Source: Mytilus californianus
Lineage: Eukaryota
DNA length: 64,000 nt
Reading direction: 5' to 3'
NCBI RefSeq assembly: GCF_021869535.1
Contig: NW_026262581.1
Coordinates: 12,710,001 to 12,774,000 of the forward strand
Part shown: one piece after another, positions 1,034-64,000 of the stretch
How the letters are laid out: each line of letters starts with the position of its first letter
Position numbering within the stretch: position 1 is the first letter of the stretch
Notes under the pieces: model-generated
What the model saw: the letters and a program-made list of their open reading frames with translations, nothing else
Database searches by the model: none
What the model was told of the DNA's origin: nothing
Translations under genes and position numbers: made by a program

Positions 1034-3475
1034 CTGAAATAAGTAAATTGATCCATATGAGAGTTTGCATGTGTAAAGAAAGTGGTAGTAAAAATATGGA
1101 AGTTAAAGTTGCAAGTTTATATTTATTCATTCAATGCCAAATTATATTAAAAACTAATTTTATAAACTAAATGAACTGCCAATGTCAAATTAATTCGGAT
1201 ACGAGTCCTTCTTGTTTTAAACTTTTTTCTCCCTCTTCCTTTTTTGTGGGGATATCGAAACTCTTAATTTTCATGTATTAATCGTGATCTTACTAATCTT
1301 ACATACTCTTCCTCTCTGTAATCCTGCAGCTTGAGCAGAATCTATGATGTAAATAAATCCAAATGACTCTTTCATGTATTCCTGAAGCCTTTTAATGATC
1401 AATCTGTTTTCTCCAATTCCTGGGGTGTCAACTAATACTATTCCATTCTGCAATAGTTTAAAGCAAAATAGAAAGTTTAGTTAAAATAAGATTATATAAA
1501 AAAGAAGATGTGGTATGATTGCCAATGAGACAACTCTCCACAAGAGACCAAATGACACAGAAATTAACAACTATAGGTCACCGTAAAGCTATTCTCCATT
1601 ACCTTTTACTTGATGTATTCTCTTGTGCAATTTTTGGGGGTTTTGACTTCTGTTTTTCACTTTTGTTACCCTTTTCCCTTTTACTTATAAGATAAAGTCA
1701 ACAAGATCCCACATCCAAAATTACAAAATACTTTACCTTTTTTATCGAAGTGGTTTATTTTTCCGTTATTACTTATTACTACAGATCACCAATACCATTT
1801 ATTTTTATATTTTACCTTTATAATTTCGGAAGGCCAGAAAATTTCGATTTTCTCAAACGGACTTTCATCATCCTCATTTAATTCTTGAATGTGATATTTT
1901 AGTTTCTTAAAGTCATTTTTTTCATCTTCGCCAAGGTCTAGACGACGGATTCCTTTTTCATCCTTGTTGTATAAAATCGCCTCTTTTTCATTATTTCTAC
2001 TGTGCCGTATCTCACAAATTGTAGCAGTGCATGCCAGCTGTTGAGTCGGTAGTAAATCTTTCCTCAAAATAAGATTAACGAAACTACTTTTCCCCGCTAC
2101 TCTATCACCTGTTTCAAGAAAAACATACAGCTTCTGTTCAAAATATTGATTATATAAACCCCCTTCAAAGATTTAATGACAAAAAATGAGTTATGTTTTT
2201 CAGAAGAAAAAGTTATCTATGATGGGTTTTTATTTTACTTGGGTCTTCAGTCTTATCTATTGCTGATTTACTATTTATTACATATTATATCAATCTTACT
2301 GGATAAAAAAAACAAAACACAAATATAAAGAAGTCACTTTCTTATACAAATTATTAAAGCCAAAATAATTATGTTGCACTTCATGAATGAAACATTTTCT
2401 TATTTCAAATTCACTACGCATTGTGATGTAATGTGCCATGTATATGTATTTAATAATTATAACAGTCCAATTGAAAAATAAAAGTCAAGAACTAGATGTA
2501 CCTAAAAGAAGATTGCACTGTAAGTGCTACAATACAAATATTGGTATATATTTTACTATACATGGATTAAGTTGAAACAGCAGTACTACCGGTGCAAACA
2601 TTGACACAACTCATTTTAACATGCACTACAAAATAGTGCAAGAGTTGTAACCTTGGTTACCTGCGATCAATATAAAGCAATCTTGGGAGAGTATGTCTCT
2701 CTGTCTGTATTCCAGTTCTTCTGTGAAATTTTGGAAAACACTATTTATATCTTTCTGTAATATATCATTCAGCTTGTCATAGAACGATTTCACTTCGACA
2801 TACTTCTGAAGTAATAATTCTCTTGTTTCTTTGTTGTTTACTACAACTTCGTCAAGGTTTGGAGGTTTCTGAATTATATTAATTATTTCAGTATTATTAG
2901 ATTGTTAATATCGTGCAATGCCAACTTTTGGATAGTATAAGACCAAATACCTTGGTATGTGAATTACGAGAATAAGAAAACCTTCAATTTTTTTCACTTT
3001 TTAAAATAAAGATACTTAAATGATATCTAAATTGAGGAGCATTAAAATCAACTATTGCAAAAAGTGGTGTCAAATAAAAAGGATATATAACTGTCAATCT
3101 AGAAATTGAAGTGTGTATCATAAATGAACACAGTTAACCGAGACATTTCAACCTGAGTCAATCATGAAATTGATCCTTAATATATAGGCCTTTGTACGTT
3201 TTAGCTTTTCTGTGTCGCTACTAGTTGATAAAGTGCAGTGCAATATCTATTCTATTGGATATAATGAATACCTAAATCTGATGTCTTACCTTTCCTTCAC
3301 CGGAAGTTGTATGTTTCTTATCCCATTCATTTAACAAAACTTTAATAATCTGATCCTTTGTTCTAAGGCCTTTGGAGATAAGTCCCCATGATTTGACAAA
3401 TCTAAAACCTGTAGGTACATCTGGAATACCGATTATATCGTCTCGACATTTAATTTCAAATCCTTTAGACGACAT
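836..3475 (-). CDS. Gene A (partial, 3' part off window): N-terminal helical module + dynamin-like (BDLP/mitofusin-type) GTPase; divergent paralogue of B and C
   Basis: Five GT-AG exons read by hand: 3290-3475, 2661-2868, 1816-2108, 1307-1447, 836-1033 (342 aa in window). Motifs GDRVAGKSS (G1), LPTQQLACT (G2), DTPG (G3), NKWD (G4). Intron phases match B and C; exons 1, 2 and 5 have identical sizes (186, 208, 198 nt). Confidence 0.9.
1307..1447 (-). CDS. Gene A exon 4 (G3 DTPG)
   Basis: ttgcag|NGIVLVDTPGIGEN...GLQRGR|gtatgt. Confidence 0.92.
1816..2108 (-). CDS. Gene A exon 3 (P-loop and G2)
   Basis: aacag|(G)DRVAGKSSFVNLILRKDLLPTQQLACTATICEIR...FWPSEIIK|gtaaaa. Confidence 0.92.
2661..2868 (-). 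CDS. Gene A exon 2 (helical segment before P-loop)
   Basis: Not in ORF track. ttcag|KPPNLDEV...QDCFILIA G|gtaacc; 208 nt as in B and C. Confidence 0.88.
3290..3475 (-). CDS. Gene A exon 1 (62-aa N-terminal module)
   Basis: MSSKGFEIKCRDDIIGIPDV...SGEGK then donor gtaaga, phase 0; 44/62 identical to gene B exon 1. Confidence 0.88.
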
Positions 3476-6413: not shown

Positions 6414-8035
6414 AACCCCAAACAACATAGTGTTTGTGTGTAAATCACATTACATAAACTGCTTTATAAATGAATTAGGTATTGACAATTCACTTGGAAA
6501 CGCAACTTATACCTCCACGACACTAACCAAACAGGAAATCCTTGATAATCATAGGTCTGTTCTATGTTCCTTTGGAATTTCAACCAAAGATGAAGAACTG
6601 GGTTTTCCATCACTTTATTGGATACCTAAACTATATAAGTGTCAACCAACGGTATATTGCTAGGTCTTCCAAGTGCTCCAGGAAACCTCTTTCTAAATTA
6701 ATAATATCAATTTTATCAGTAATAAAAGCCGGGCTTCAAACTTATTGTGAAACTACCTATTCTAGAGCTGGCGTGAATCAGATGTGGAGACTGAAAATTC
6801 CAAAGATCTTTTAGAGTACATACAATCTAAGACTCTTTCATCTTGCATTAGTATTAAAACATTTGACTTTTCTACACGTTACACAAGTATTCCCCATTCC
6901 AAACTAAAAGATAAATTGAAAGAGTTGGTCCTGCTTTGTTTCATAAAAAAGAATGACCAATGTAGATACAAGTATCTTGTCTTAGGGAGGGATAAATCCT
7001 ACTTTGTAAAAAATCACTCTGATTCAAACAAAAAAAATTTCTGAAACTGACATTATCAAGATGCTTGCTTTTTTGATTGACAACATATTTGTTACGTTTG
7101 GAGGATGTGTTTTTCAACACACAATTGATATTTCCATGGGAACCAACTGTGCCCCCCTTTTTACCGACGTGCTGCTTTATTCATATGAGGCTGACTTCAT
7201 ACAGGAACTTCTTAAGAAGAAAGAAAAGAAGTTAGCAGTATCCTTTAACTTTACTTTCCGCTATATAGATGATGTTCTCTCACTAAATAATTCAAAATTT
7301 GGTGACTATGTTGAACGCATCTATCCCATCGAACTTGAGATAAAGGATACAACAGATACAGTTAAGTCTGCATCATATCTTGACTTACATCTAGAAATTG
7401 ACAATGAGGGTCGGTTGAAAACAAAACTTTATGACAAAAGAGATGATTTCAGCTTCCTAATTGTAATCTTTCCATTTCTATGTAGCAACATTGCAGCAGC
7501 GCTTGTATACGGAAAATATATCTCCCAGTTGATACGATATTCCAGGGCTTGTATTTCCTATCATGATTTCCTTGATAGAGGGATGCCAATCACAAGGAAG
7601 CTATTAAACCAAGAGTTCCAAGTGGTGAAGTTGAAATCATCCCTTCGTAAATTTTACGGACGACATCACGAGTTGGTTGACCGTTATGGAACATCTGTTT
7701 CACAGATGATAGCGGACATGTTCCAAATGTCGTAACTACAATCCTGTCCTTTCCCCCGAATGTGACCTACCGATTTAGACTTATTACCGGGTTTGTACTA
7801 ACATGTTCAACACGACGGGTGCCACATATGGAGCAGGATCTTCTTACCCTTCCGGAGCACCTGCGATCACCCCAAGTTTTTGGTAGGGTTCGTGTTGCTC
7901 AGTCTTTAGTTTTCTATGTTGTGCTTTGTGTACTATTGTTTGTCTGTTTATCTTTTTCTTTTTTAGCCATGGCGTTGTCAGTTTATTTTGACTTGTGAGT
8001 TTGAATGTCCCTTTGGTATCTTTCGCCTCTCTTTT
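6414..8035 (+). mobile_element. 5'-truncated Penelope-like retroelement (RT + thumb + 3' UTR), frameshifted
   Basis: KTFDFST.YTSIPH, ISMGTNCAP, FRYIDD, LDLHLEID...TKLYDKRDDF. The ORF stops after the thumb with no downstream GIY-YIG, as in permuted Naiad-type PLEs (inference). Confidence 0.88.
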
Positions 8036-28400: not shown

Positions 28401-31400
28401 TTGTCTTCAATAGTAATGTTTTTCTTTAATTTTTCTTGTCCATCCATTGTACTCAAATCTATTTTCACTTCCTTTCCGCCTTTAGCTTCAAAGCAAATTG
28501 CTTTCTTACGACCATCTTTGCTCTTTCGAATTTCGCAAACAGTCTGTGTACATTTAATTCCACTTGTAGGAAGAATGTCTGCTTCAAGCAATAAGTTTAT
28601 AAGACTGCTTTTTCCTGATGTTGCTTCACCTAAAAATGATGTCTCAGAATTAACGGAATTTAGCAAGGAAGCAGGAACCCTTGCCTTTCCTACCGTTAGA
28701 ACGCCACATACGGGTTGGGTTGTTCACTATGTGTGACACGGAGGGCAGCTTCGAAGCGCAGAAAAAAAAATGATCGAAATAAATTATCACATGGTAATGA
28801 GGCATTTACTACAAAAAAGATATTGTTGTCAGTAAGTTTGTCTTTTTCTCTTTTCTACAAAAAAATTGTCAAAGTATGTTTAAGACTAGCTGACAATAGG
28901 TCTCTAGATACTATGACACGAACTAATTCCGTTGTTTCTAATCTCACCAATGATACTACGTAGACCTAAGGTGTACAGTAAAAATAAGAAAGGCCACAAT
29001 TGCAAATGAGGCAATTATCAACTAAGAGAACAAAGTACTACTAGGATGTAAACAACTACGTATACAGGTCAACAACGAAAACAAATCGGTTGTTATAAGC
29101 TAAGCTATTAAGGTAGATAGGGTGTCTTCCTCCATATTGGATTGTGAAATACCAGAAAACAATCGGTCTAGATCTATAATAAAAGGTGCAAATTTTGAGA
29201 GTAGTAGGTAATTCATGTGTAAGAATTTTCATTTCAATATAGAAAATGACATATTTTATCATATTTATGGTTGTATTTTACTAAAAAACAGAATACTTTT
29301 GTTTGATTCTATATTTTCCAACTTTGTCACATAAGGGGAGGCAACTCAAATGTAAGGGCAGATAATTCACATTAAGTTACTTTTACAATAGAATGTGTTA
29401 AGAATTTATCTATTTTATTATGTAGCAAGAAAACGGGTCCGGTGACCCCATTTTTTCTTTTTCTTATCTGAAAGCATACTATTAGAGCTATCTTCTCATA
29501 TTTTATCTCAAAATTCTATGGTGTAGTTTTCATTTTATGGTAGAAAATTGGGTTTTCCATGCATAATCTATACAAAATCTGTCAATTTTGCACAACCTGT
29601 AGCGTAAAAATAAGGCCGGTGACTCATTCTTTTTATTATTTTTTTTTAAAAAGCATGATATAAACTACATTTTGGCAAATTATTAAAAAATTCTATGGAT
29701 TATAATCTACCTTAATAAAAAGAAAAACAATTATTGCAAACGCTAACGACCAACATGCGCTGGACTACATTCTTGGGACAGGCGCATAAAGAATGTGCCT
29801 GGTTTGAGCAGTCTGAGTCCAGAGTTGGAGCAGGTGGTAAATATTGTCACCCAACGCATCGTTCCTGAATTGAAGGACCAAATAGCTAAAGCAATTGAGG
29901 CTATCCAGAGGACACCTACGCCCTGCTCAATCCCATGAAAAGTTGTTGGGAATATAAAACCTACACAAAACTCTCAGAATGAGAAAAGAAAGCCTTGTGA
30001 AACATTTCGGAGTGACTTTCGGAGGGAAAAGAGCTTTAAAAACAATGGATATAGATTTAACTCCAAGTCAGCATCGTCAGTCCCCGGAAGCATATAGGCT
30101 AATGGATTTAGGGAAGACACCAATTAAAGTTGAGAGATTAAGACATAGTTTAAAAAGTTAACCGAATAAAATTGATGCACATATATTGTTAGATGGATTT
30201 ACAAATGGATTTAAAGTAAACTACATGGGTCCGCTTCAATCTTTTAATTGTTCAAACTTGATTTCTGAATTAGAAGAAAAAAAAATTAAAGAGATTCAGG
30301 CTGGGCAAATAGCGGGTCCCTTCAAAAACAAACCTTTTTCTAATCTCCGCTTATCACCGATAGTGCTTGTAGCTAAAAAGCCTCCCCAGGCTCTGAAACT
30401 CACGGCTGGCGTATGATTCAACATTTGAGTTATCTATTTGGAAGTAGTATTAATAGCTTTATTGACCCCCAACTAGCAACTGTGCAATACATATCCTTGG
30501 ATAAAGTTCTTGGTACTATTAGTAAACTAGGAAAGGGGGCAGAACTGGCACGAAAGGATATAGTCCCGGCATTTAGATTATTAATATTGCACCCTGATGA
30601 ATTTGTTTTATTTGGTTTTCGCTTCCAAGACCACTTTTATTTCCAGAAAGCGCTCCCGATGGGTTGTTCGGCGGCGTGCGCCCTGTTCGAAAAATGTGCA
30701 TGCTTTTTGGAGTGGTTGGTCCGGTTCCAATCGTGCAAAGCATAGATAGAGTATTATTTCCTACTTGCTGGAGAAGCTAGGTCTGGGGAATGCTTGCATC
30801 TCATGAACAATTTTAGGCTTATTTGCAGTGGTATTTGAGTTCCCTTAGCGGAGGATAAAACTTTAGGTCCTTAGTGTATTATGACTTTTCTGGGTTTAGA
30901 AATAGATACTTTGGAGATGGTTATTCGAATATCACAAGACAAATTAACAGTAGTTAAGGAAAATTGGAATTGATTATAAAGAAGAGAAAAATCACTCTAA
31001 AAGATCTTCAATCTCTAGAAGGCTCTCTGAATTTTTGTGCCAAAGCAATTCCGTCAGTTCAAGCATTCAACAGGAGGTTTTGTGATGCGATGTGTGGGAT
31101 ACAAAGGTTAAATCATTTTATCAGGGTGACACTAGGTATGAAAAAGGATATAAAAACTTGGCTTACATTTCTCAAGAATTTCAATGGTACTTTGGCTTTT
31201 GATGAGAGTGAACGGCTTTCAACTTGTGAAATACATTTGTTTGCAGACAGCGCTGGTAACCCAGATTTAGGTTTTGGGATTTACTTTTCAGGTCGATGGG
31301 CTTATTTTCAAAGGCCTTCTAGTTGGGAAAACCATGATTTGGCTGACATAACTCTCTTAGAGTTGGTGCCTATTGTGCTCTCAATCTTATGGTTTAAAGA

Positions 31401-34400
31401 GGATTTGCATAACAAACGAATACTTTTTCATACAGATAATAAGGCGCTTGTGAGTATTTTGAACATGAAATCCTCAAAATCGAGACGAGTGATTGAGTTG
31501 GTTCGGCCTTTTGTATCACACACAATGCGATATAATATGCAATTTAAAGCAGTACATATAGAAGGTTCGAACTTCATTCCTGATGCTATTTCACAAAAAC
31601 AGTGGCACAGATTCCGCATGGTATCACCAGAAGCAGAGACAGAAGCAACACCAATTCCAGAAACTTTTCTGCAGCTGATTTCCGATCTGAAATTGATCGT
31701 CCAGTAGATGCTTTACTAGCTTCGAACACGAAGGATACATATAGAACGGGGTTGCGAAGTTTCGAGATATTCCGTAAAGATTTTGATTTAGAGTGCGTTT
31801 GGCCGCCTCCCCCCTCGCATATTGTACTTTTTATTGCATATTTATCACTGAAAGGGAGGGCACATAAAACTGTCAGTTGTTACGTGACTGCTATTGGTTT
31901 TCGTTGCAAGGTTTTACAGTCTCAATTTATGGACTATTCATAAAATTTTATTATACGTAAAATGTTAGAGGAATTGAAACGCTTTAACTTCTCGAAAGAT
32001 AAGAGGCTTCCAATTACAATGGAACTCTTGGCTAGGATAATTGAAAAGTTGCCATCTATTATTCTGCATATGAATCTTTACTTTTTGCGGCAGCTTTTTC
32101 AGTCGCCTTTCATGGCTTTCTTAGAGTTGGAGAATTGGTTTACACAAAATTAGGCAAAGTGCAAAATATAATATCAGTACATGGTACACAAATTTTATGC
32201 GGAGCAAAAGTGGGGCTCATAAGGCTTCACATAACGCACTCTAAGGGGGATCAAACTGGTAAAGGTATTTCTATTGATATAAGGAAGACAGACACTCCAA
32301 TTTGTCCAACACAGCTATTAAAAAGATACCTAACAGTAAGACCAAATAAAAATGGTCCTCTACTTAGTCAATTTAGTGGAAAATATGTGTCTCGTTATCA
32401 GTTCTTCTGTATATTGACCAAGGCATTAAATGTAATAGGTATTGATTCAAGTAGCTACAAGTCCCATTCATTCAGAATTGGTGCAGCTTCAGAAGCCTCA
32501 GCTAAGGGAATTTCTAATAAGGAAATTACGAAACTGGGACGATGGAAATCTGTTGCATATAGGTCATACATTAGATTGGAATACTTTTAGTTTGATGTGG
32601 TCATGGACTAAGCAAAGAAATTATTGTTTATCAATGTAAATAGTTTGTACATGTGTTATTAAAAAAAAGTAATTGTGTTTTAATAAGTATGCTTGAGAGA
32701 TATGAGAAAAAAATCGGTTTTGATAATTGGCTCGTCCATTGTAAAACATGCATTTACCCATGCCCGTACCACTTATGACGGCATCCATTTGGGTTTGAAG
32801 CGGAAAAATTGTACTATTTGGTGGCAAGGTAAAGAGGGGCATGAATTGGGACGAATTAGTACCAAGGATAAAATATTTTTTAAAATTTGAACAGGAACCA
32901 GATTTTTTAATTGTACATTGTGGGGGCAACAACATATACTCCTGCAAGTTACATAATTTTAGATGTCAAATTAAGGGATAACTGTATAAGGTTTCAGAAT
33001 TGCAACCTAAAACTAAACTTATTTGGTCCCAGATACAACAGAGGCTTTTTTGGCGGAATGGCCAAAACATTAAGTCTCTGAACCGGGCTGCTGTAAGGAT
33101 TAAAAATTTTGCTGGTTGGTTATGTCTCAAGTCTGGTAGAGGATATATAAAATATACTGAAATAAGGTGGAATGAGAAAGGACTATTCCGCAAGGACGGT
33201 GTCCCTCTTTCAAACATAGGGAATACACTATTTTTGTAGAGAATTCAATGTTTTCTCCAGGAAGTTGTTTAAGCGTTACTAATGAAAGAAAATGCACATG
33301 TAATACTTTGGTGTACAAACTGTGCGGTTACAAATGCAATAATGTTTTGTTAGTTCTAGTCGTGCACTTGCAATAGTGTGTGATGATGTTCGTTTATTCA
33401 AAGGCTTTGCCTGATAAGGGATTGATATAATTATGTATTCACAAAAAGTAAAAAAGCCACGGCTTGTTGTGTCGTTTCTTTTGATTTCATGGCGGTGTGC
33501 GCATGTTTAACATGTGACCATGTGGCAGGAAAGCGACACGACGCCAATCTTGCACCATGTTCACATAATGGACTATAATATCTGTTACTGGGCTTCTGTT
33601 CCCAGGGCCAGTATTCTTAAAGTCAATGTCAGTATTCATAAATGGACAGTAATGATAAAGTGCTCTTTTTGTACAAATGGTTCTAATTGATCATTCTTGG
33701 TCCATGCTTAATTTATAATTGATAAATTGTGATCCATGCTAATGTTATAATTGATTAATCGTGATCCATGCTAATGTTTTAATTGATCAATCGTGATCCA
33801 TTCTAATGTTGTAACTGATTGACAGTGATCCACGCTAATGTGTTCTTCGTGATTCATGATCATGCTAATGTGTCATCTTGATTTATGATAATGTTTGATA
33901 AATTTGTATCGTAAGCCTAAATCCATCAATTGGAAACACAACTTCAAAATACTGATGGATTCAGTCGAGGATTATGCCAGGCAATCGGTTAAAGGCGAGA
34001 AAGAAGACGTAGACACTCTTTCCGAATAGATTAAGGCTGTGAGGTCGTTGATACAAATCAGAATTAAGAAACTGAATGGGTCTATCAATACCCATGCTAC
34101 GTCAATCTTTAAAGACCCAAATGTTGCAAAACACTTGTCCTACCTCCATGACAAATATGTTGTTGTCCCCGCAGATAAAGCCCCCAAACAACACCGTTTT
34201 TGTGTGTAAATCACATTACATAAACTGCTTGATAAATGAATTAGGTATTGACAATTCACTTGGAAACCCAACATATACCCCCACGACACTTACTAAAGAG
34301 GAAATCCTGTATAATCATAGGTCTATTCTATGTTCCTTTGGAATTTCAACCAAAGATGAAGAACTGGATCTTTCATCACTGTATTGGATACCTAAACTAC

Positions 34401-37400
34401 ATAAGTGTCCTTACAAACAACGGTATATTGCTGGGTCTTCCAAGTGCTCCACGAAACCTCTTTCTTAATTATTAACATCAATTTTATCAGTAATCAAAGC
34501 CGGGCTTCAAAATTATTGTGAAACTGCCTATTCTAGAGGTGGCGTGAATCAGATGTGGATACTGAAAAATTCCAAAGATCTTTTAGAGTACATACAATCT
34601 AAGACTCTTTCATCTTGCAACAGTATTAAAACATTTGACTTTTCTACACTTTACACAAGTATTCCCCATTCCAAACTAAAAGACAAATTGAAAGAGTTGG
34701 TATTGCTTTGTTTTATAAAAAAAGAATGGCCAACGTAGATACAAGTATCTTGTCTTAAGGAGGGATAAATCCTACTTTGTAAAACATCACTCTGTTTCAA
34801 ACAAAAATTCTCTGCAACTGACATTATCAAGATGCTTGATTTCTTGATTGGCAACATATTTGTTACATTTGGAGGACGTGTTTTTCAACAAACTATCGGC
34901 ATTCCCATGGGAACCAACTGTGCCCCTCTTCTTGCCGACTTGTTTATTTATTCTTATGAGACTGACTTCATACAGGAACTTCTTAGGAAGAAAGAAAAGA
35001 AGTTAGCAGTATCCTTTATCTTTACTTTCCGCTATATAGATGATGTTCTCTCACAAAATAATACACAATTTGGTGACTATGTTGAACGCATCTATCCCAT
35101 CGAACTAGTGATAAAGGATACAACAGATACAGTTAAGTCCGCCTCATATCTTGACTTACATCTAGAAATTGACAACGAGGGTCGGTTGAAAACAAAACAT
35201 TACGACAAAAGAGATGATTTCAGCTTCCCAATTGTGAACTTTCCATTTCTATGTAGCAACATACCCGGTGCGCCTGCATACGGAGTATATATCTCCCAAG
35301 TGATACGATATTCCCGGGCTTGTATTTCCTATCATGATTTCCTTGATAGAGGGTTGCTGCTCAAAAGGAAGCTATTAAACCATGAGTTCCAAATGGTGAA
35401 GTTGAAATCATCCCTTCGTTAATTTTACGGACGCCATCACGAGCTGTTTGACCGTTATGGAATATCCGTTTCACAGATGATAGCGGATATGTTCCTAATG
35501 TCGTAACTACAATCCCGTTCCCTTTTCACGAATGTCACCTACCGAATTAGACTATTTACCGGGTTTGTACTAACATGAGCAACACGAAGGGTGCCACATG
35601 TGATCACCCCCAGTTTATAGTGGGGTTCGTGTTGCTTTTTCTTTAGTTTTCTATGTTGTGTTTTATGTACTATTGTTTGTCTGTTTGTCTTTTTCTTTTT
35701 TAGCCATAGCCTTGTCAGTTTCTTTTCGATTTATGAGTTTGAATGTTTGAATGTCCCTCTGGTATCTTTCGCCCCTCTTTTGTGAGCCGTGGGCTTTTTT
35801 GGTCAATTAAAATAATGGTTCATTTTATATCTCTTTGGTATTTATTCAAGCATGAATCTTAAGTTAATTCAACCTTTACTAATAGGGGATAGCTTGCTTT
35901 AACTTTGTGAACTTGCAGTCTCAGTTGGTATTCGAGTTACCTTTCTTGATACAGTTTCTATATATGTAGGTCTGCGATTTTCTGAAAATCAAACTTCGCT
36001 TCTCGGAAAAGGGTCATGTGGCCCAGTGAACCAATAACGTTTGTGACGTCAGTATATCGTTTGCATCAGCGTTCAGAGATTTGAAGAAGAATAAGCAGAC
36101 ATTTTTTCGACAGAGAAAAGTTCGAAGTTTTGTATAAATATTTCTATGTAATGTGAGAAAAACCCACCCTCCCACCTCTTGATTTGAAAATGTGTGTATT
36201 TTGTCGATATACTGCTGCTGTTTTGATTTATTTTTCAGGTTTTTTATGGACAGTATATTATTTCTATGTACCCAATGTTGTATGATGATTCGTCATGGCT
36301 CACCAAGAGTGTAGAAATTCCAAGATGACTCAAGAAGAGACTTAGTTAGTAATATTCCGTTTAAATTTTGATCGTTATTCTATAATTGAACTCTCTAACG
36401 TGAGGGTACCCAAATTGCACCTATTTTGACAGTTTTTTCACCTACGTTGTTTTATGATCCAGACAAAAGTTTCCATTCTGTGTTTATTTCGTATACGTAT
36501 TCTTATTTACTATATAGTTACACCAATTTAATTTTGAATCCATATTGAATCATAGAAAAATGGGTTTGAACCGACCTCCTAACGATCCATGATTTTGTTG
36601 TGAGGTGTACCCAAATTGCATCCATGCTTAAATTCACATCTTTAAAAATCGAGTAAACAGATGTTTTGTTTTTTTTTCTTCAAATATTTAAAACAATTTG
36701 ACATTAGACCATGCTTACTATTCATTTTTTTAGAAATGGATGCTTGTAACATATTTTATTTGCTCATTTTTAAAAGATGACCTTTTTGTGAACGTCGCAT
36801 GGCGACGGATCCGTAGATTTTACCTTTCCCAGTGAATGCTTCATCTGTTGATATACTGTGAACGTTTTGTGTATATTTAAATATATTTACCTATGTTGAA
36901 AGACGTGTACAATGTCAAATCATAAAAATACAAATTGTTTAGTCTCAGAGAAAATTGTAAGATTTCCTCGCCTATTTTTGTTGAAACGGTGTAATTTGGG
37001 TACTCGGTGCAATTTGGGTACTGTGACGTTACACCTTTAATAATGGACTAAATCGTTGAAATACTTTGACACAGAAGCGTAGGATCAATGAACATTTTCA
37101 TTCTCTTAGAATTCAAATAATGTTTTGAAGGACCATCTTAAGCAGATCGGCGGGAAAGCGACACATCGCCAATAATCTTGCACCATATTCACATAATGGA
37201 CTATAATATCCGTTACTGAGCTTCTGTTCCCAGTATTATTAAAGCCAATGTCAGTATTCATAAATGGACAGTACTGATAAAGTTTTGTATAGATGGTTCT
37301 AATTGATCATTCTTGATCCATGCTAATGTTATAATTGATTAATCGTGATCCATGCTAATGTTTTAATTGATCAATCGTGATCCATTCTAATATGTTATAA

Positions 37401-40400: not shown

Positions 40401-41075
40401 AACAAGTTACAATGTATGTGCCATTCTTAAAAGAATTATGAGAGACTATATTCATGATATTATTAAATATTCATTTACACATTATAAAACACATATTTTC
40501 ATAAAAATTGTAATATTTTTAAATACTATTATTAAGTTATGTATATATTAAATAATTTCTTCCATAAAATCATTATTAAAAAGTGACACTACAGTGAACA
40601 TATTTTGTCTTAAATCGTTATGTAGAGGACATTTTAAAATCACATGATTTTCATCTTTTATTTCGTTAGTACAGTTAAAATTTTGAGAAAGCCGTCAACT
40701 GAAGGTAACCAATCCTTAAGATTAACAGTGTTATTACTGATCACCCCTCACCTAGCGAAATTAACAGATTTGTGATTTATATAGCCGAATCGTTAAAATC
40801 TTAATTTTAATTTGCTTTCCAGTTTCCTATTATCAATGCAAAGACTATATTAATGAATGTACTCAAAATTCTACAATCTAAACAGTTACCTTTTCTTCCT
40901 CGGACGCTGTATGTTCCTTGTCCCACTCATTTAACAAAACTTTAATAATCTCATCCTTTGCTTTTATACCTTTAGTATTTAGTCCCCACGATCTTGCAAA
41001 TCTAAAACCTGTAGAAACATCAGGAATACCGATTATATCGTCTCGACATTGAATATCATACTCTCTAGAAGACAT
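13047..41075 (-). CDS. Gene B: complete 10-exon, 989-aa N-terminal module + dynamin-like GTPase + helical stalk + protein kinase fusion
   Basis: Exons 40890-41075, 37984-38191, 28343-28629, 26121-26258, 25365-25562, 24583-24698, 19503-19951, 18017-18707, 16301-16589, 13047-13454. Total 2970 nt, in frame, all introns GT-AG. GTPase motifs GEATSGKSS, LPTSGIKCT, DTPG, NKWD. Kinase motifs GSGSFADVY, VALK, HRDMKLEN, DVG, GSPVYMAPE. Confidence 0.93.
13689..13995 (+). repeat. Dispersed DNA-transposon-like fragment with a TTAA|GG end; inverted copy at 29420-29715
   Basis: The two copies align over ~300 bp (cacgctacaggttgtgcaaaattg..., ggggtcaccg). The TTAA-GG terminus is Kolobok-like, but only one end is seen. 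Confidence 0.55.
16301..16589 (-). CDS. Gene B exon 9 (kinase to catalytic loop)
   Basis: tttag|(R)ETKHPNIIQYYGC...HRDMKLENIL|gtgagc; 289 nt. Confidence 0.94.
18017..18707 (-). CDS. Gene B exon 8 (stalk + kinase N-lobe start)
   Basis: taaag|(G)TLLGEHDKK...LLGSGSFADVYKG...VALKYC...LLEDRTL(R)|gtattc; 691 nt. Confidence 0.94.
19503..19951 (-). CDS. Gene B exon 7 (helical stalk)
   Basis: tttag|WLSQIVKRANYTLK...QIEAIE G|gtacaa; 449 nt. Confidence 0.93.
20682..20860. mobile_element. MITE nested in the gag ORF of the PAT/DIRS-like element
   Basis: TA duplication at 20680-81 and 20861-62; removing it restores ...DEKK-I-RAADNRAVKK in frame. Confidence 0.9.
22040..22250. repeat. Abundant dispersed repeat (aactataggtcaccgtacggccttcaacaat family); related copies near 470-720, 1500-1590, 23090-23200, 44385-44640, 48800-49035
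   Basis: Shared motifs gatgtggtatgattgccaatgagacaact and ccgtacggccttcaacaat, seen in both orientations. Confidence 0.75.
23416..23461 (+). ncRNA. Degenerate minimal type I hammerhead ribozyme motif (best-paired of at least 8 remnants)
   Basis: tacgcca-atgaaga-gtct(tgtgt)agac-gaaa-agggcg-tc-tggcgta. Stems I and II pair and GAAA is intact, but the CUGAUGA core and stem III are mutated. Confidence 0.6.
24351..24430 (-). pseudogene. Decayed duplicate of gene B exon 4 (DTPG exon) inside intron 6
   Basis: Reads QGLFMIDTPGFNEIQMHKCLQ; 55/63 nt identical to B exon 4 (26121-26258); acceptor lost and frame breaks afterwards. Confidence 0.8.
24583..24698 (-). CDS. Gene B exon 6
   Basis: The ORF track shows the wrong frame. 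tacag|AKRAMEYGAIDSVHKDFISKGLQNLFPASLRQQLNSHY(C)|gtaatg; 116 nt; supplies the phase 0 to 2 link. Confidence 0.92.
25365..25562 (-). CDS. Gene B exon 5 (G4)
   Basis: Not in ORF track. tttag|LKDFLRNVVN...TLFVCNKWDVVP...YFSTTE|gtatat; 198 nt. Confidence 0.93.
26121..26258 (-). CDS. Gene B exon 4 (G3)
   Basis: Not in ORF track. ttcag|EGLVIIDTPGFGEIQMHKSLQKYLSKSCGFIYVVNTSNAGGVQKGR|gtaaga. Confidence 0.93.
28343..28629 (-). CDS. Gene B exon 3 (P-loop, G2)
   Basis: tttag|(G)EATSGKSSLINLLL...YWPTDVIE|gtatgt; 287 nt. Confidence 0.95.
33690..33880. repeat. ~32-bp tandem repeat inside the Ngaro B repeat (second array 37300-37470)
   Basis: Unit gatccatgctaatgttataattgattaatcgt, about 5-6 diverging copies, no spacers. 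Confidence 0.85.
33908..35781 (+). mobile_element. 5'-truncated Penelope-like retroelement nested in Ngaro repeat B1
   Basis: RT motifs YTSIPH, GIPMGTNCAP, FRYIDD. The empty site aaatttgtgagccg is preserved in B2 (~37496-37509); a 2-5 bp target duplication (gt to tttgt) is possible. Confidence 0.92.
36398..37029. mobile_element. Non-autonomous DNA transposon (~630 bp) with ~24-bp TIRs and TA flanks
   Basis: TA|acgtgagggtacccaaattgcacc ... ggtgcaatttgggtactgtgacgt|TA (3 mismatches). Confidence 0.85.
37984..38191 (-). CDS. Gene B exon 2
   Basis: ttcag|GGIVLHQELLYHRGN...PECNILVA G|gtatat; 208 nt. Confidence 0.92.
40890..41075 (-). CDS. Gene B exon 1 (62-aa N-terminal module)
   Basis: MSSREYDIQCRDDIIGIPDV...SEEEK|gtaact, phase 0. 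Confidence 0.87.
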
Positions 41076-56500: not shown

Positions 56501-59500
56501 TTTGATACAAGTTAAAACAAACTTCGTCAAAAAGTTTTATGTTCGACTGAAATAGTAAAACTTCTATCATTGGCAAGCTGTAATAGCAGTAACGATACCA
56601 ATTGTACTGCACCAGGTGCGCATTTCGACAAAACAATGTCAAATCAGTGATGCTTGAGGCTGAAATACTTGAAAACCCAAATTTATAGCGTGTACATGTC
56701 AGAACTGCATGGATTTCATCTATCAATTTCTAAACCAAATATTAAATCAGCCCATTTAAAAAAGGAAAGAAAAATATACCAAAAATGTCTAATTTAGTGG
56801 GTACAGTTAAAATAAAACCCTTTGCCAACAAATACGTGACATCACGACAAAACATAAATTCGCATACACGAACTATAGCTAAACATCATTAAGCTCAAAA
56901 CAACTGATATGACTGGTGTAACTATTCTTTTTAAATTAAACCCAAGAAAACCTTTGCAAAAACTTTATGTTCATTGGATAGTTATATATCACGTTAGTAT
57001 CAGCATCAAATAGATGCATTGTTTATCTGAAAATCGATTAATTGGTTCAACTGAGAATTGAGTTGAACTTGAGGCGAAAGGACGAATGGACAGACTAATG
57101 CAGTATACCGCCACTCTAAAAGTGAATCTGTAATTAAAATTGTCGGAGAAAATCTTCATATTAAATACAAAAATCCTTAATAAGTTTTATAATTAAAGTT
57201 TACTATAAAAATTTTATGTTGACCTCAAATTTCTTGTATTGATATTAATTCTCTGAGATATTACCTCTGTGGTTGAAAAGTAATATATTTGCTCTTGTCG
57301 AAGTCCCTGAAATATTTGTTCCAATCGGTACACAATTCCCCGCTTTATTTCTTCCCTGTCCTTAGGTGGTACGACATCCCATTTATTGCAAATGAATAAA
57401 GTGGACGACGGACTGAAATCTTCTTCTGAAGAGTTGACTATATTTCTTAGAAAATCTTTCAACTAAAATATACAAAGTATTGATAATTACAAATTATGTC
57501 AGCACTACGGCAGATACAACAGGATATGTGTTGCGGGTTGCCATTCAAAACAATTGATTTTGCAATGCATCAGATTTTTTCTACCGTTCCTTTTGACATT
57601 TCAATACGATGGATTTTGCAAAATGTACGAAAGATTTTGATATGTTTAACCCATTGCATCTGCAGTACCGATAGTCGATAACAGGGTGAAAAGTATAATC
57701 GACAAATTTTCAGTTTTACAAAACTGTATAGCTGCTTCACATATCTTCAACGTTTCCTAGGGAAATGCTTTGCTTCCTTTAAGATTACACCATTTCTATA
57801 ACTGGTGTCTAAGTTTGTAGGCTGTTTTTTTCTAATTTACCAGTAAGATATCATAAATTTGTCATGAATATTGTAACATCAAATGAGACTTATATTTAAA
57901 AATAACTTCCTTCTTAATTTATTAAGAGTTTGTCAGCATACATCAAGTCTCATTGTACTATTTTGTCAAACTGGCACTTGTACTATAGTCTTAGGCTAGA
58001 ACTGTACTAAACTCTGATTTATTAATTTGATCAAGTTAACACAATTTATTCTTGAATACAATTGTCATTCTTTTTATTATTCTGATAATATACTGTTATA
58101 AACATATCTTTTGATACGGTTTTGTACTTTTCCTACTTATGTGGGTTTTTTTAAAACTATTACAGTTACTTTAGAGTAGATGGCTTTTCTTGTTCTGATC
58201 TTTAATCTATAGGTATACACTTTTAATGTACATGTTTTATTCCACTGATCGAAATTAATAAAGGGAAACATAAAGGTATAAGAAACAAGAAAAAATAAAA
58301 CTAACCCCCGCAATATGTCAATTTACATGACTATTGTCCTAAGTAAAAAACTCTTAGTTTTTATCTGAAGTTTTTGTCATTTGGGAAACTTGGTTTTGAT
58401 GACAGATTTTTGAAAGTTTCTCGTATATATTCACAAATTCTTTTAGACTCGATGCGTTTAGTGCTCGATATCTTGTGAAGACAGCTGTCTTTTGTTGAAG
58501 ACCTTATGCTTACATGTAGATATCTTATTTTTTCTTTCTTTTGTGTATTTTTTTCATTAGCGCACACCCAATATCTCCTTTTATTCATTGAAGAAACCAT
58601 GTGAATGTATAAAACCTGATAGGTACATTACAAATAAGTTTTATGGTTCAAAAATTTTAAATTTCATGCGTCCAAAGAGAGGTGAAATTCAATCAGAAAC
58701 ACTTCTAGGACATTAATGAGTTATCAACCATTTCTTACCCGTCCTCTCTGAACACCGCCTGCATTAGCAGTATTCACAACATAAATAAATCCACACGATT
58801 TTGAGAGGTACTTTTTAAGTGATTTGTGTATCTGGTTGTCACCGAATCCAGGAGTATCTATTATCACCAGACCTTCCTGGAAAAAACCCAGTAAATTGGA
58901 AATTTTGTATCATTACTTATTACAATATACTTGTACATTCAACATATTATACAGTAAAAAAAAATTGTAAACGGCATTATGAAATATTTCATCTGATCAT
59001 CCATGACCTTTACAATAAACCCACATGTTCTCTTTTTCCTAAAACGGCAACGCTTTTAAACATTGCCATTTAAATTTAAATAATAAAATCCAATTGCGTA
59101 ACAAGACTTAAATTGCTAATAAGAAAACAAATTACATAGCCGCATAAAGGCCGGTTCAATGCAAACATTTTAATATCATGTAGTCATAAATCACATCTAG
59201 TAATAAAATCATCGTAAAAGTGGGTTAATATACTCATATCTTTTGCAATCACAAGTCAATAAGAGAGTTTCTTTTTAGTAGAAAAGTCAGCTGCAACTTC
59301 AGGTTTACGCATCTTACAACTGTGGACAAGATATCCAGTAAAACCTATTTGTTAAATTGAAATTAGAAACCAAATCAATTGGCAGAAAATTTGAAGACAT
59401 TATTTTTTTAAAGAGATACCTCTGAAATAAAGAAAATATACCTCGACTTGATCCTTGATACACTCAGCAAAAGTTAAAATTCGGCACAGTTGCCGTTTGA

Positions 59501-62500
59501 TACGTTTGAAGTATCTCTCATAATTAATTGAAAAATTAAACTGTTATATAAGAAGCAAAACTTGAGTGAATAAAAGATTGAAAAAAAAACGTGTATCTTG
59601 ATAAGCACGAAATTTTATTTGAAATAGTGTATATTTTTACAATTTCATATATCCCATTACAACATACCTCAATTATATCAGTCGGCCAATATATTTCAAT
59701 TTTATCGTACGGATTGTCACCATAATCGTCTTCATATACTATTTCTCTTCTTAACCTTTCTTGTCCTTCCTTGGTACTTAGATCTATCTCTGATCTCTGT
59801 CCGCCATTAGACCCAAAGCAGATTGCCTTCTTTCGACCATCTTTGCTCTTCCGTATTTCACAGACTGTTTGTGTGCATTTAATACCACTTGTAGGAAGAA
59901 TGTCGGCTTCCAGCAATAAGTTTATAAGACTACTTTTTCCTGATGTTGCCTCTCCTAGAAAAAGATGACTTAGAGCTCATTGTTGTGCAAAAATATATTG
60001 AGGTTTTGAAACTTTTAGTGATGCTCAAGCTGAAGAAATCAATATAACAATTACTTCAATGTATTATCATAACATGCATAAGAAAAAAAGAACATCATTT
60101 GATGCACATGCCTGGCGCATAATTCTCGTGTACTTCAAAAAAAAAAGGAAAATTCATCAAAGACCAAGCGCTTTCATTACTGATTACAACTCACAGCAAG
60201 ACATGTAACCAAGGTCAAAAGCCCATGCGTCAACTAAAATGATACCTTTTGATATTATAATCGAAATCCACTTCATACGTTATCAAAGAAATGCTTGCAA
60301 GAGTAACCAATGAATTGCACTGATGGGGTTTTCACCACTTATTTCATTTTTGAATGAAGTTTAATATCAGAAAAATCTTAAAAAGAGACTCAATGTCCAT
60401 GATGGACACTGGTTTTATTTTGTAAATAATATCTAGTAGCAAATTTGACTTGCAGTAATGCATGGCTATGCTTTTGTAGAAGCTGTACATATTGTTAGTT
60501 TAGTTGAAAATGTTGTACAATATGCCATTAATGTTCGTCGTCTGTATTCATGTATTACCGAACTATTCTGCTCGAAATGCATTGTGTCAGGGGCAAAGTG
60601 TTGTTTATTTAGCTTAATTTAAAACAAAAGAACATGCATTTATATTATTATATACCTGCAACAAGAATGTTACATTCAGGTGATGACAATTCGGATCGCT
60701 TCAAATGAGCAGTCTTTTCAATGTCTGGAAAGATATTATTCAAATCTTGTTGGAAGTTGACAGGTAGTTCTTTATAAAAGTTCACGACTTTGTCATACAG
60801 TTTCATTAATTTCTCTCTATTTCCTCTGTGATATTGCAATGCTTCTTGTAAAACTGTTCCTCCCTGAAAAGTTTTTAAAAATATGCATAAAAATAAGTAA
60901 GTTATATATATAATGTCCAACCTTTTTTAAGGAAATAATTGGTAACACAGTCTTCTTCGTGTGATTATTTTGTGCAATGGTAAAGATTATTGTTCATTCG
61001 ATTATTTAATTTCAAATAGATGAGAGCTAATTTTAAAAGTGTAAATTGCGGAAATTAAAGTCAGCTTGTTCGTTTTACAATACATATACAATACAATAGC
61101 GAAAACATCACTCAATCTGCTATTTTACAGAAAATTTTGTTTTTGTTTAAAACCAATATGATTTGTTGAATGTGCAAACGGTTCAAAAATTTTCGAGATG
61201 ATATTTACATCGAAGAACCTGCACGCAGCAAAATAAAACTACAAGTTGTGCAAATGCACCTGTTACATGATTCATTGTTGGTTGCTTAACGTCCAGTGGC
61301 AAATATTTCATGCATTTTTAGGACGACACATGTTACATGTGCAGTGGTTATTAATTTTTTTACAATAAGCTTCCGTGCTATAAGTTGCGGCGAAAAATTA
61401 TTGTCCGTAATGTTCAGGCGATTCTCAGTGATACTTTTATACCAGATGTAGGTTGTGTAACGAGACAACCGTGCACTGACCTGTATACCTGTATCAAGTC
61501 ACTAGAATTTTAGACCACTACTGACCAGTATACATGTACTAAGTCAGTAGAACAAAAAACAACTATTGTCCAGAATGCATGTACAATGCCAGTCGGACAA
61601 CAGACAACAATATTTCTACAAGGTCAGTAGAACTAAAGCCATCTAACGATTAATATATCTGTATAAGTTCAGTATAACTAAAGACATCCACTGACCAATA
61701 TGTATGTACAAGGTCAGTGGAACTAAAGTAATATCTGACCAGTATACTTGTACCAAGTCAGTAGAACTAAAGACAGCATGCATACATGCACAAGAATCAA
61801 ACATGATGTAAAATATATGTTTTTTTTTCAGTGCATAATGAATTCTCAAGTTATCTTCTATGTTATACTCACACTTTGCTTATGTATGTATATAGAATGC
61901 ATGAAAATAAAAATACGAATAGATAAAAAAAAAGATGAATACTAAAGTGCAAGGTCATGAAAAAAGTCAAAAACGAAAAGATCATTGGCAAAAAAGAGAC
62001 AGCACGAAAAAATGAAGTGAATAGGAATTATATGTCCTTACTCTCATTATTTCACCTCTATCTAAATTACGGAATAAAATTGGTATACGTTTGGCTGAAA
62101 TTTAGAAACGTCATATAGAAATCAATATCTCAAAGTATATAAGTAAAAAAAGTATTCATGCTTAATCAAATGAAGCATAGCTTAATTAAAATTCACACGT
62201 TGATGCTTCAGAATAATTTTCAATGATCAGCAGAGTGTCTGACTTAAATTTTAATTTATTAAGATCGATGAACTGTCACTTTTTGAGTACAATTAGTCTG
62301 GGACTTCCCCCAACAATTTGAATATAATTCTGAAATCTGCTACCTTTAAACACATTAGTAACGATAAAAAGGCGAAATAGTCTCAATGTTCCGAATGACT
62401 GATTCTTTAGAAAACGGTTAAAACATTGACTAGTATCGTGTTGCAGTGATTGTAATTTGTCATGTCATGTGAGTTATTCGCCTACAGAGATATAAAAAAA

Positions 62501-62996
62501 ACATAGTGTGGATACATAATTTATCATTTTAAACCTATCACTATATAAATAGTCTTCTCGTTCCCATCAGTATAAATATACCGACAGAAGCAAGCATGAT
62601 TCAAATATATTCTTATTTTTAAACACACCAAAAACAGACCGAATTATCGAAAAGTTTGCTAGAATTTAGGTTTCTATCTTAGGTGCATCACTGTCATATT
62701 CTTTTTATTGCATTTTCAAACCAATAAAAACAAACAATTTAACACACGCATTCATAAGACTAATGAATTTGTATACATAAAGGTCGAAATCAGTTAAAAT
62801 AAAATCTTACCGTTTTTCTATCTTTGGGTGCAACAGCTCCATTTTCTTTATAAAATTTGACTAGTTCTGATACGAAAATATCTTTATTTGCAGTTTTTGG
62901 TGCTTTTATTCCCCACTGTTTAAAAAGTTTCATCATGGACGATATATCTTTCAGTTGTAAAATGTCTTCTACATTGTTGATTTGTATTTCTGCCAT
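50119..62996 (-). CDS. Gene C: complete 10-exon, 989-aa N-terminal module + dynamin-like GTPase + helical stalk + protein kinase fusion
   Basis: Exons 62811-62996, 60656-60863, 59668-59954, 58739-58876, 57265-57462, 56073-56188, 54078-54526, 52844-53537, 52163-52451, 50119-50523. Total 2970 nt, in frame, all introns GT-AG; same motifs as B. Confidence 0.93.
50614..51114 (+). mobile_element. Penelope-like 3' fragment in gene C intron 9 (shorter related pieces near 49480-49830 and 55095-55280)
   Basis: Aligns with 7530-8035 and 35300-35781, ending ttcgcctctctttt. Confidence 0.88.
52163..52451 (-). CDS. Gene C exon 9 (kinase)
   Basis: ttcag|(R)ELQHPNIIQYHGC...HRDMKLENIL|gtaaat; 289 nt. Confidence 0.94.
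52844..53537 (-). CDS. Gene C exon 8 (stalk + kinase N-lobe start)
   Basis: aaaag|(G)TLLGEQDKK...LLGSGSFADVFKG...VALKYC...LLEDRTL(R)|gtattt; 694 nt. Confidence 0.94.
54078..54526 (-). CDS. Gene C exon 7 (helical stalk)
   Basis: aatag|WLSQILKRANYSLK...QIITIE G|gtaaat; 449 nt. Confidence 0.93.
56073..56188 (-). CDS. Gene C exon 6
   Basis: Not in ORF track. tttag|AKRAIEFGTINSGHEDFISNGLQRLFPASLRQQLNSHY(R)|gtaatt; 116 nt. Confidence 0.92.
57265..57462 (-). CDS. Gene C exon 5 (G4)
   Basis: tttag|LKDFLRNIVN...TLFICNKWDVVP...YFSTTE|gtaata. Confidence 0.93.
58739..58876 (-). CDS. Gene C exon 4 (G3)
   Basis: Not in ORF track. tccag|EGLVIIDTPGFGDNQIHKSLKKYLSKSCGFIYVVNTANAGGVQRGR|gtaaga. Confidence 0.93.
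59668..59954 (-). CDS. Gene C exon 3 (P-loop, G2)
   Basis: tctag|(G)EATSGKSSLINLLL...YWPTDIIE|gtatgt; 287 nt. Confidence 0.95.
60656..60863 (-). CDS. Gene C exon 2
   Basis: ttcag|GGTVLQEALQYHRGN...PECNILVA G|gtatat; 55/69 identical to B. Confidence 0.92.
61472..61790. repeat. ~45-bp minisatellite with internally palindromic unit, gene C intron 1
   Basis: About 7 diverged copies of ccactgaccagtatacatgtacaaggtcagtagaactaaagac (ctgacc...ggtcag dyad). Confidence 0.8.
62811..62996 (-). CDS. Gene C exon 1 (62-aa N-terminal module, divergent type)
   Basis: CAAGATGG start, MAEIQINNVEDILQLKDISSMMKLFKQWGIK...KDRKT|gtaaga, phase 0; same 186-nt size as exon 1 of A and B. Confidence 0.82.
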
Positions 62997-63425
62997 CTTG
63001 TCTTGTCCGTGGTCAGTAAATTCTTTCACGTGTGCTGTAATAAGAAAGTCTTGAGATTCTTTATAATTGCTCCATAATCCGATTCTGTGAAAATGGGTGA
63101 ATTTTGGTCACAGTGGTTAAATCAAACTTCCTTATTGTAAAAAAAAATACAGAATTATTTATAAGAAGTGTAAAAACCTATGCGCAGTCGCTGTAAATAT
63201 GAAATGGTATTTAAGTTGTTTGCTTGAAATTTTAGCCTCACAAAACCCGTTTAAACGACAATACTATATTTGTTTTGAATATACGGATCAGTTATGAAGA
63301 TCAACAAAAATGAATGTTTAATATGTTGTCTATAACACGTGCCATAGACATTTAAACTAAAATATCAGCTTATGACTTATATTCAACTGCATTCAATATA
63401 AATCGTTGTAAACCATTTATACGAA

Positions 63426-63635
63426 ATGGCGGGCACATTAGAAGGAAGCAGCGAAAAGTGTATAGATATATCTTCTCAAATTATAAAAGACATTGAAGAC
63501 TTTTCTGACGCCTTCGAAATTGCAGAGAATTTAGACGTCGACCTTGGTGGGCTTGGAGAGCTGGAAGAAATGAAAGAACGATTGATGATGGAATTTCATA
63601 AGTGTCAGGCTGGCTTTATAAATCATAAAGAAAAG
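63426..63635 (+). CDS. Gene D putative first coding exon (70 aa), acidic version of the N-terminal module; rest of gene off window
   Basis: AAATGGCG start; MAGTLEG...QIIKDIEDFSDAFEIAENLDVDLGGLGELEEMKERLMMEFHK...HKEK|gtcggt, phase 0. Ungapped 11/42 identity to the B exon 1 core with the hydrophobic pattern kept. Confidence 0.7.
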
Positions 63636-64000
63636 GTCGGTATAATGAATATAAGTGATCGCCTCTTTGCCATTCAATGTCCTCGGCGACACTTTTGGCT
63701 TTGCAATACTATATTTCAAGAAAAAGAAATCTTTAAAAAAAAAAGCTCTTTCTTGGGATTTCTTCCAGCACTAACAAGTTTGTAACATTCAAATAGATGA
63801 TATTTGTATTTTTATTGTTTCACAAATTGTGGTTCTGGGCTTTTTTCGGTGGAGTTTGATTGAGTAATTCAACAGATTTTGTATGTGTTATAATTTTTGA
63901 TGTTTATTAGTTTATACCTACGTATTCTGTCAATATGCTTTCAGTTTACATATGTCTATTGACTATAGTTAAGGGTTTTGGCAAAGTCAGAACATCTCAA

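Follow-up and report, generated by a model that had tools for sequence, protein, structure and literature searches.

Why should two genes of one family, whose products begin with short segments of opposite charge, stand head to head across a few hundred nucleotides (nt)? The question is raised by the right-hand end of a 64,000-nt stretch of the Mytilus californianus genome (NCBI RefSeq assembly GCF_021869535.1, contig NW_026262581.1, positions 12,710,001 to 12,774,000 of the forward strand), which we call the window and in which all positions below are counted. The window is AT-rich (~32% GC, zero N) and holds three paralogous genes, A, B and C, all on the minus strand, together with the start of a fourth gene, D, on the plus strand, for which exon 1 is the sole exon in the window. 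A preliminary description of this DNA had placed the start codons of C (62996, minus) and D (63426, plus) in divergent orientation with 429 nt between them and had read their first exons as charge-reversed copies of one N-terminal module, here called the head; the coordinates are correct, and the D-type gene faces C only, as A and B have no such partner in the window. C and D are paralogues that separated long ago, each with a helix-loop-helix head, a mitofusin/BDLP-like GTPase and a C-terminal kinase domain, and below we describe their common promoter, their relationship and the conservation of their arrangement before asking whether the two proteins act together.

Transcription and splicing of genes C and D

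RNA reads and contigs were mapped on positions 58001–64000, the contigs coming from three separate studies and the reads including one stranded RNA-seq run from 2026. The contigs of all three studies are spliced and are therefore RNA-derived, and in the stranded run the C and D signals lie on opposite strands. On the C side the contigs join exon 1 from 62811 to 60862 and confirm two additional introns. On the D side they begin at 63241, 63256 and 63284, reach 63635 and then enter sequence beyond the window edge whose phase-0 translation, ICREMKDYKR, matches the exon 1/exon 2 junction of two Mytilus proteins, P0030 and P0031, considered below. The segment 63426–63635 is thus both transcribed and spliced, with the splice falling exactly at 63635 before the GT. 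One of these contigs (X2) is 4767 nt in total, 395 nt of it inside the window, so that D must be a large gene.

The C transcripts end at 63103–63146 and those of D start at 63241–63284, leaving about 100–200 nt between ends; as the outermost ends are <100 nt apart, the promoter is bidirectional. The two genes are divergent, both are transcribed and their starts lie <1 kb apart, as in other bidirectional-promoter pairs, and the divergent pair described from the DNA is therefore borne out by contigs and stranded reads as two genes transcribed and spliced from a short common promoter. The preliminary description had also proposed that a splice acceptor just upstream of the C start codon implied a separate exon in the 5' untranslated region (5'UTR). 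An acceptor-like ttcttattacag is indeed present at 63035–63036, but contigs among the three studies run colinearly over it, from 62810 to 63103 (X6), 63131 (X1) and 63146 (X2), and no splice joint at this position occurs in any transcript seen in them. Because the C contigs are unbroken through the site, the acceptor is unused and the proposed exon falls away.

Some further features of these transcripts deserve mention. The D 5'UTR has upstream ATGs at 63294, 63310, 63314, 63323 and 63372, which open short upstream reading frames of 3–13 codons that might damp or regulate D translation. Within C intron 1 a 59-nt element (61268–61326) is very deeply covered on both strands in each of the four RNA runs, with variable flanks, and probably represents a mussel repeat of high copy number present in many transcripts; a search of 61000–64000 against Rfam gave zero RNA families, the 59-nt element included. 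A bacterial promoter and terminator scan of the C–D intergenic region was set aside as irrelevant to an animal genome.

The identity of gene D

Searched exhaustively with phmmer, the 70 residues encoded by D exon 1 gave 12 matches, mostly short read-through open reading frames (ORFs) with the same acidic head. Among them was a scallop protein of 1073 residues (P0011), in which Pfam places Dynamin_N at 158–296 (1.9e-18) and a kinase domain at 792–1037. A word search from P0011 returned 38 proteins of ~1000–1250 residues with the same architecture, from bivalves, amphioxus and cephalopods, nearly all of them named 'uncharacterized'. P0030 (M. trossulus) and P0031 (M. galloprovincialis) have an N-terminus like that of D as well as the exon junction seen in RNA, and we therefore take them to be the D orthologues; the identity between D exon 1 and P0030 is 79%. 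An exact look-up of the window's 119-residue read-through ORF and of P0031 found zero recorded entries.

The Mytilus D orthologues are full-length proteins of 1033–1058 residues with head, mitofusin/BDLP-like GTPase and kinase domain. A short decoy is ruled out by this architecture, and the decoy role that had been suggested for D does not survive. All D-type proteins have an intact P-loop (GETSAGKS). The kinase domain is altered in P0030, P0031 and all 27 bivalve D-type proteins, which have VHMELN in the catalytic loop and KLTGGC in place of DFG; the catalytic and metal-binding aspartates of the HRD and DFG motifs are lost, which is a pseudokinase signature. Read from its orthologues, gene D would be a pseudokinase, and it belongs to an old sister clade.

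Active and pseudokinase clades

The ORFs of genes A, B and C in the window encode HRDMKLENILV, KLTDVGLTK and YMAPEV, together with the P-loop GEATSGKS (in gene B within the ORF at 28307–28666), and the kinase ORFs score 8.1e-16 against Pkinase. All three genes thus have the HRD..N, DFG-type aspartate and APE motifs of an active kinase. They match the active-type Pinctada protein P0062 along their entire length at 37–59% per exon, whereas the D-type P0030, aligned to the window, matches the exon at 63426–63638 and, weakly, the GTPase core only.

In a rapid maximum-likelihood analysis of 43 proteins, rooted on a kinase-less Trichoplax relative and uncertain at the root and along the long branches, the family falls into two clades. 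The active one unites cephalopods, a gastropod and bivalves, with B and C among them; the pseudokinase one comprises amphioxus and molluscs and contains the D orthologues. The support for this split in the Shimodaira-Hasegawa-like approximate likelihood ratio test is 81 and 96.

Homology and charge of the heads

The preliminary description had aligned D exon 1 to the head without gaps, with 11/42 identities to B, and had reported a central 16-residue segment with 5 K/R and 0 D/E in each of A, B and C as opposed to 5 D/E and 0 K/R in D. Both counts are reproduced. Judged from single pairs, however, the similarity would be only suggestive, as shuffle tests give p ~0.002 for B–D, 0.2 for A–D and 0.6 for C–D. 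A comparison of profiles by hhalign, with 10 basic heads on one side and 44 acidic heads on the other, is significant: the probability is 94.5% and E is 7.6e-8 over 48 ungapped columns, placing B residues 10–57 on D residues 16–63, which is the register proposed earlier. The heads of Trichoplax, octopus and amphioxus are sequence intermediates that bridge the two types, and from the profile match and these intermediates we conclude that the heads are homologous and that the head is an ancestral N-terminal element of the family. A word search with four basic heads recovered six close Mytilus fragments only, and the basic heads of other taxa were read from adjacent loci or obtained by searching with the cephalopod protein P0047.

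Comparison of this genome with M. trossulus gives a ratio of nonsynonymous to synonymous substitution rates (dN/dS) of 0.2 in exon 1 of D and of 0.09 in that of C, and these low values indicate purifying selection on both heads. In bivalves the net charge of the 16-residue segment ranges from +1 to +5 in active-clade heads and from -1 to -7 in pseudokinase-clade heads. Elsewhere it is +2 and +3 in amphioxus, +5 in Trichoplax, near neutral in cephalopod active-clade heads and -3 in the gastropod active-clade head. As the heads of Trichoplax and amphioxus are basic, the acidity of the bivalve pseudokinase clade is derived.

A protein of 777 residues from Trichoplax sp. H2 (P0065) carries Dynamin_N and a basic version of the head but has no kinase domain, and the head therefore either predates the kinase fusion or has outlasted the loss of the kinase.

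Predicted structures

The D orthologue P0030 was modelled with AlphaFold2 (AF2) from an alignment of 40 sequences, giving a mean predicted local distance difference test score (pLDDT) of 80.4 and a predicted template modelling score (pTM) of 0.75. Over residues ~65/73–746 the model matches mitofusin 1 and 2 and Fzo1 (Z 27 to 23), with Z 27.3 over 335 residues for Mfn1 (5gnt) and Z 22.4 over 586 aligned residues for full-length BDLP (2j69), and residues 743–1040 match kinase domains (Z ~23). A segment at 572–608 is predicted to be disordered. As expected of the mitofusin/BDLP class, the protein has a dynamin-type G domain with a P-loop, flanked in the model by a helical neck and trunk. The head (~14–60) lies outside both the mitofusin and the kinase matches and is therefore an appendage beyond the mitofusin fold.

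In the AF2 model the head consists of a short helix, a helix at 26–36, a nine-residue extended loop at 37–45 and a helix at 46–60/64, and the window's own D exon, modelled alone, takes the same shape (pLDDT ~89 for residues 21–60). This is the helix-extended loop-helix arrangement of SAP/HeH domains (~35–45 residues). An exhaustive structural comparison of the head gave a best Z of 5.2, all scores being low and under the noise guide of the tool. SAP/HeH/LEM-type structures were among the top matches, namely CDNF (Z 4.8, root mean square deviation 1.8, 42/42 residues), MANF (Z 4.3) and the Rho N-terminus (Z 4.8), with Hcc-1, Tho1, PIAS1, SLX4, MKL1 and the emerin LEM domain as additional ones. 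Neither a SAP sequence profile nor a clear structural match was found for the head, the best SAP-type Z being 4.8. Pfam scans of the C head, the D head and 44 head sequences gave zero families, a profile of 55 heads found nothing meaningful among PDB sequences, and Foldseek found zero matches of the head model to the PDB at E <1. The predicted shape, and the shape alone, weakly suggests a SAP/HeH-like head.

Conservation of the head-to-head arrangement

The divergent arrangement, which the preliminary description had noted as worth seeking in related genomes, is kept far beyond Mytilus. In M. trossulus, where the whole C–D intergenic region is 93% identical to that of the window, the C and D orthologues lie on opposite strands, 433 nt from ATG to ATG. 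In Argopecten irradians a 999-residue neighbour with a basic head stands opposite the acidic pseudokinase P0011 at a distance of 1047 nt. In Mercenaria mercenaria the active-clade P0061 is opposed, 805 nt away, by a 1099-residue neighbour with two tandem heads, the second of which is very acidic, and in Dreissena polymorpha the active-clade P0060 has an acidic-headed neighbour on the opposite strand at 758 nt. A tblastn check of clade membership places the neighbour in Argopecten among the active-clade genes and those in Mercenaria and Dreissena in the pseudokinase clade. Head-to-head pairs of a basic active kinase with an acidic member of the pseudokinase clade are thus present in four bivalve orders, represented by Mytilus, Argopecten, Mercenaria and Dreissena. 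The gastropod Babylonia areolata also has a divergent family pair (locus L008, 405–758 and 10001 onward), 9.2 kb apart, with head charges of +1 and -3, its active-clade gene being opposite to the bivalve pattern.

Two details of these loci may be added. In the Mercenaria neighbour (locus L004, 8867–9196) the first of the tandem heads is of mixed charge and the second has 7 D/E in the 16-residue segment. The M. trossulus C orthologue (locus L002, 5117–9567) is annotated as a 217-residue product only, which may reflect either an incomplete gene model or decay of the copy; the protein encoded by its exon 1 is 97% identical to that of C.

Layout of the window

The coordinates of the features are collected in Table 1. 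The coding part of exon 1 has 62 codons in A, B and C and 70 in D, and it ends in phase 0 before a GT in all four genes, so that what had been noted for D, A and B is true of C likewise. The body of gene A lies mostly beyond the left window edge, that of B spans 38173–13056 and that of C 60851–50125. Exon 1 of B is 71% identical to that of A and 20% to that of C, and the body of B is 75% identical to that of C. Between and inside the kinase genes are fragments of retroelement ORFs (reverse-transcriptase and integrase-like) at 6542–7735, 30413–32590 and 34076–35422.

Table 1. Positions of the C–D locus and of related exons in the window
Feature	Position	Strand	Evidence
Gene C exon 1, coding part, 62 codons, phase 0, basic N-terminal head	62811..62996	-	translation; joint 62811 to 60862 in 3 contig sets and raw stranded reads
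C head module, residues 8-55, aligned to D residues 16-63	62832..62975	-	alignment and hhalign
Gene C 5'UTR, unbroken with exon 1	62997..63146	-	colinear contigs X1, X2, X6
Core of common bidirectional promoter, between outermost C and D transcript ends	63147..63240	.	RNA contig ends
Gene D 5'UTR, five upstream ATGs	63241..63425	+	D contig starts 63241, 63256, 63284
Gene D exon 1, coding part, 70 codons, phase 0, acidic N-terminal head	63426..63635	+	translation; donor at 63635 as loose ends in 3 contig sets
D head module, residues 16-63	63471..63614	+	hhalign; AF2 models
Start of D intron 1; remainder of D past window end	63636..64000	+	RNA depth absent beyond 63635 except bin edge
Gene C intron 1 (GT..AG), with 59-nt repeated element 61268-61326	60864..62810	-	RNA joint
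Gene B exon 1, basic head, A-type sequence	40890..41075	-	sequence
Gene A exon 1, basic head	3290..3475	-	sequence

Do the two proteins act together?

Because the pairing is conserved in four bivalve orders, both proteins probably work together. We propose that C and D are co-regulated since they act as a heteromer, a reading to which we give a probability of about one half. In such a heteromer the contact would most likely be made by G-domain dimerisation, as in mitofusins and pairs of bacterial dynamin-like proteins, with the D pseudokinase acting allosterically on the C kinase or providing a scaffold for it. The opposite charges of the heads might then provide an electrostatic handle that favours or gates heterotypic contact, or they might mask each other. 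What suggests a heteromer is the G-domain dimerisation of mitofusins and BDLP, the pairing of bacterial dynamin-like proteins and the action of pseudokinases as allosteric partners. That the acidic head of D docks directly on the basic head of C is in our opinion rather doubtful. A still bolder proposal, which we regard as unlikely, is that the bivalve bidirectional pair predates the split of the main orders and encodes a GTP-gated kinase/pseudokinase heterodimer, joined via charge-complementary SAP-like heads; this would be a kind of signalling module not described before, and may show an earlier form of the DSTYK lineage.

Several observations weigh against the two proteins acting as a heteromer. 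At the loci examined in Pinctada, Saccostrea, Tegillarca and Octopus a divergent partner is absent within 10 kb. The polarity of the heads is clade-wide in bivalves and is shared by the unlinked genes A and B, Pinctada P0062 and Saccostrea P0018, so that charge belongs to the two bivalve subfamilies and not to the linked pair specifically. The kinase exons of D lie past 64000, and its pseudokinase state is inferred from orthologues. Furthermore, contig depth does not keep a steady ratio between C and D over the four runs, D being ~17 times C in X6 and the two roughly equal in X1, X2 and X21, although this mismatch is weak evidence in either direction.

The main rival is that the heads, though homologous, make no contact with one another. 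An anionic ligand (for example nucleic acid or an acidic membrane lipid) would be bound by the basic head in the manner of basic SAP/HeH domains, the acidic one would have lost this ligand or gained another partner, and the genes would remain linked only because a common promoter is hard to split. We consider this quite possible, if not the likelier course of events. The matches of the head to SAP/HeH/LEM folds, including the protein-binding MANF and CDNF with BiP, all at low Z, speak for it, as do an acidity that is derived and clade-wide (the Trichoplax and amphioxus heads being basic) and a polarity that unlinked paralogues retain. It accounts less readily for the opposite signs of the heads in 4/4 bivalve pairs and for an arrangement kept over four orders, and a SAP match is absent at the level of sequence.

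An improbable alternative is that the acidic head folds onto a basic patch within the D molecule, perhaps a basic disordered trunk loop, and acts as an autoinhibitory lid that is released upon GTP binding. The short loop that joins the head to the first neck helix (residues 61–70) is modelled with confidence (pLDDT 87) and the model offers a disordered segment at 572–608, but a lid of this kind would leave the conserved pairing with a basic-headed partner unexplained. Chance resemblance of the D head to those of A, B and C, as might arise between short helical, low-complexity N-termini, can draw on the weak A–D and C–D shuffle tests; we reject it on the profile evidence, which keeps the same register, and it is hardly credible given that the head occupies the same position before homologous full-length proteins and that intermediate sequences exist. 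Of these readings we retain the heteromer of C and D as our working proposal. A conserved kinase/pseudokinase pair that shares a promoter makes it a concrete hypothesis, with possible gating by GTP, and the C and D heads offer a natural charge-swap experiment.

Comparison with known systems

The GTPase-kinase family is uncharacterised and appears in databases only as 'uncharacterized protein', although a bidirectional pair of paralogues and a kinase/pseudokinase pair are each of a known kind. Literature searches that linked DSTYK to dynamin, GTPase, pseudokinase or bivalve turned up no account of the family or of the pairing. The cephalopod protein P0047, which lies in the active clade with B and C and has HRDLK, DVG and APE, is named 'DSTYK-like' by NCBI, and the link between the mussel family and DSTYK is solely that name; a search of the PDB returned no DSTYK chain. 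The papers found describe the function of DSTYK as little known and make no mention of a GTPase part (PMC10492769). If the link is true, the mussel proteins could shed light on a kinase of human disease in which the N-terminal two thirds lack an explanation.

With mitofusins, Fzo1 and BDLP the family shares Dynamin_N, an intact P-loop and, in the model of the D orthologue, the fold over residues ~65–746, and it differs from them in adding a C-terminal kinase or pseudokinase and the N-terminal helix-loop-helix head. The predicted head shares with SAP/HeH/LEM domains a helix, a nine-residue extended loop and a second helix, whereas the D head is acidic and nucleic-acid-binding SAP domains are basic. 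The docking of PB1 type A and type B domains, which the preliminary description had invoked, has in common with the mussel heads the idea that homologous modules of opposite charge pair heterotypically, but PB1 is a ubiquitin-like beta-grasp of ~80 residues and the mussel head comprises ~45 residues. The AF2 head is all-helical, with strands absent, which rules out membership of the PB1 family and leaves only an analogy. The likeness to NLR sensor/helper pairs is also one of analogy, as NB-ARC and NACHT are absent from the pair, in which Pfam gives only Dynamin_N, MMR_HSR1 and kinase families.

Closer parallels are found among proteins that work in pairs. Bacterial dynamin-like proteins encoded by adjacent genes form heterotypic complexes, for example Campylobacter DLP1/DLP2, and like C and D they are two diverged paralogous BDLP-like GTPases whose genes are adjacent and co-expressed. 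The mussel pair differs in being divergent on a bidirectional promoter, fused to kinases and animal. Kinases and pseudokinases are likewise known as partners in STRAD-LKB1, HER3-HER2 and JAK JH2-JH1. As in pairs of the STRAD-LKB1 type, an intact kinase is matched in the mussel by a paralogous domain without the HRD and DFG aspartates; the mussel pairing differs in being read from gene linkage alone, and in that both partners carry a GTPase.

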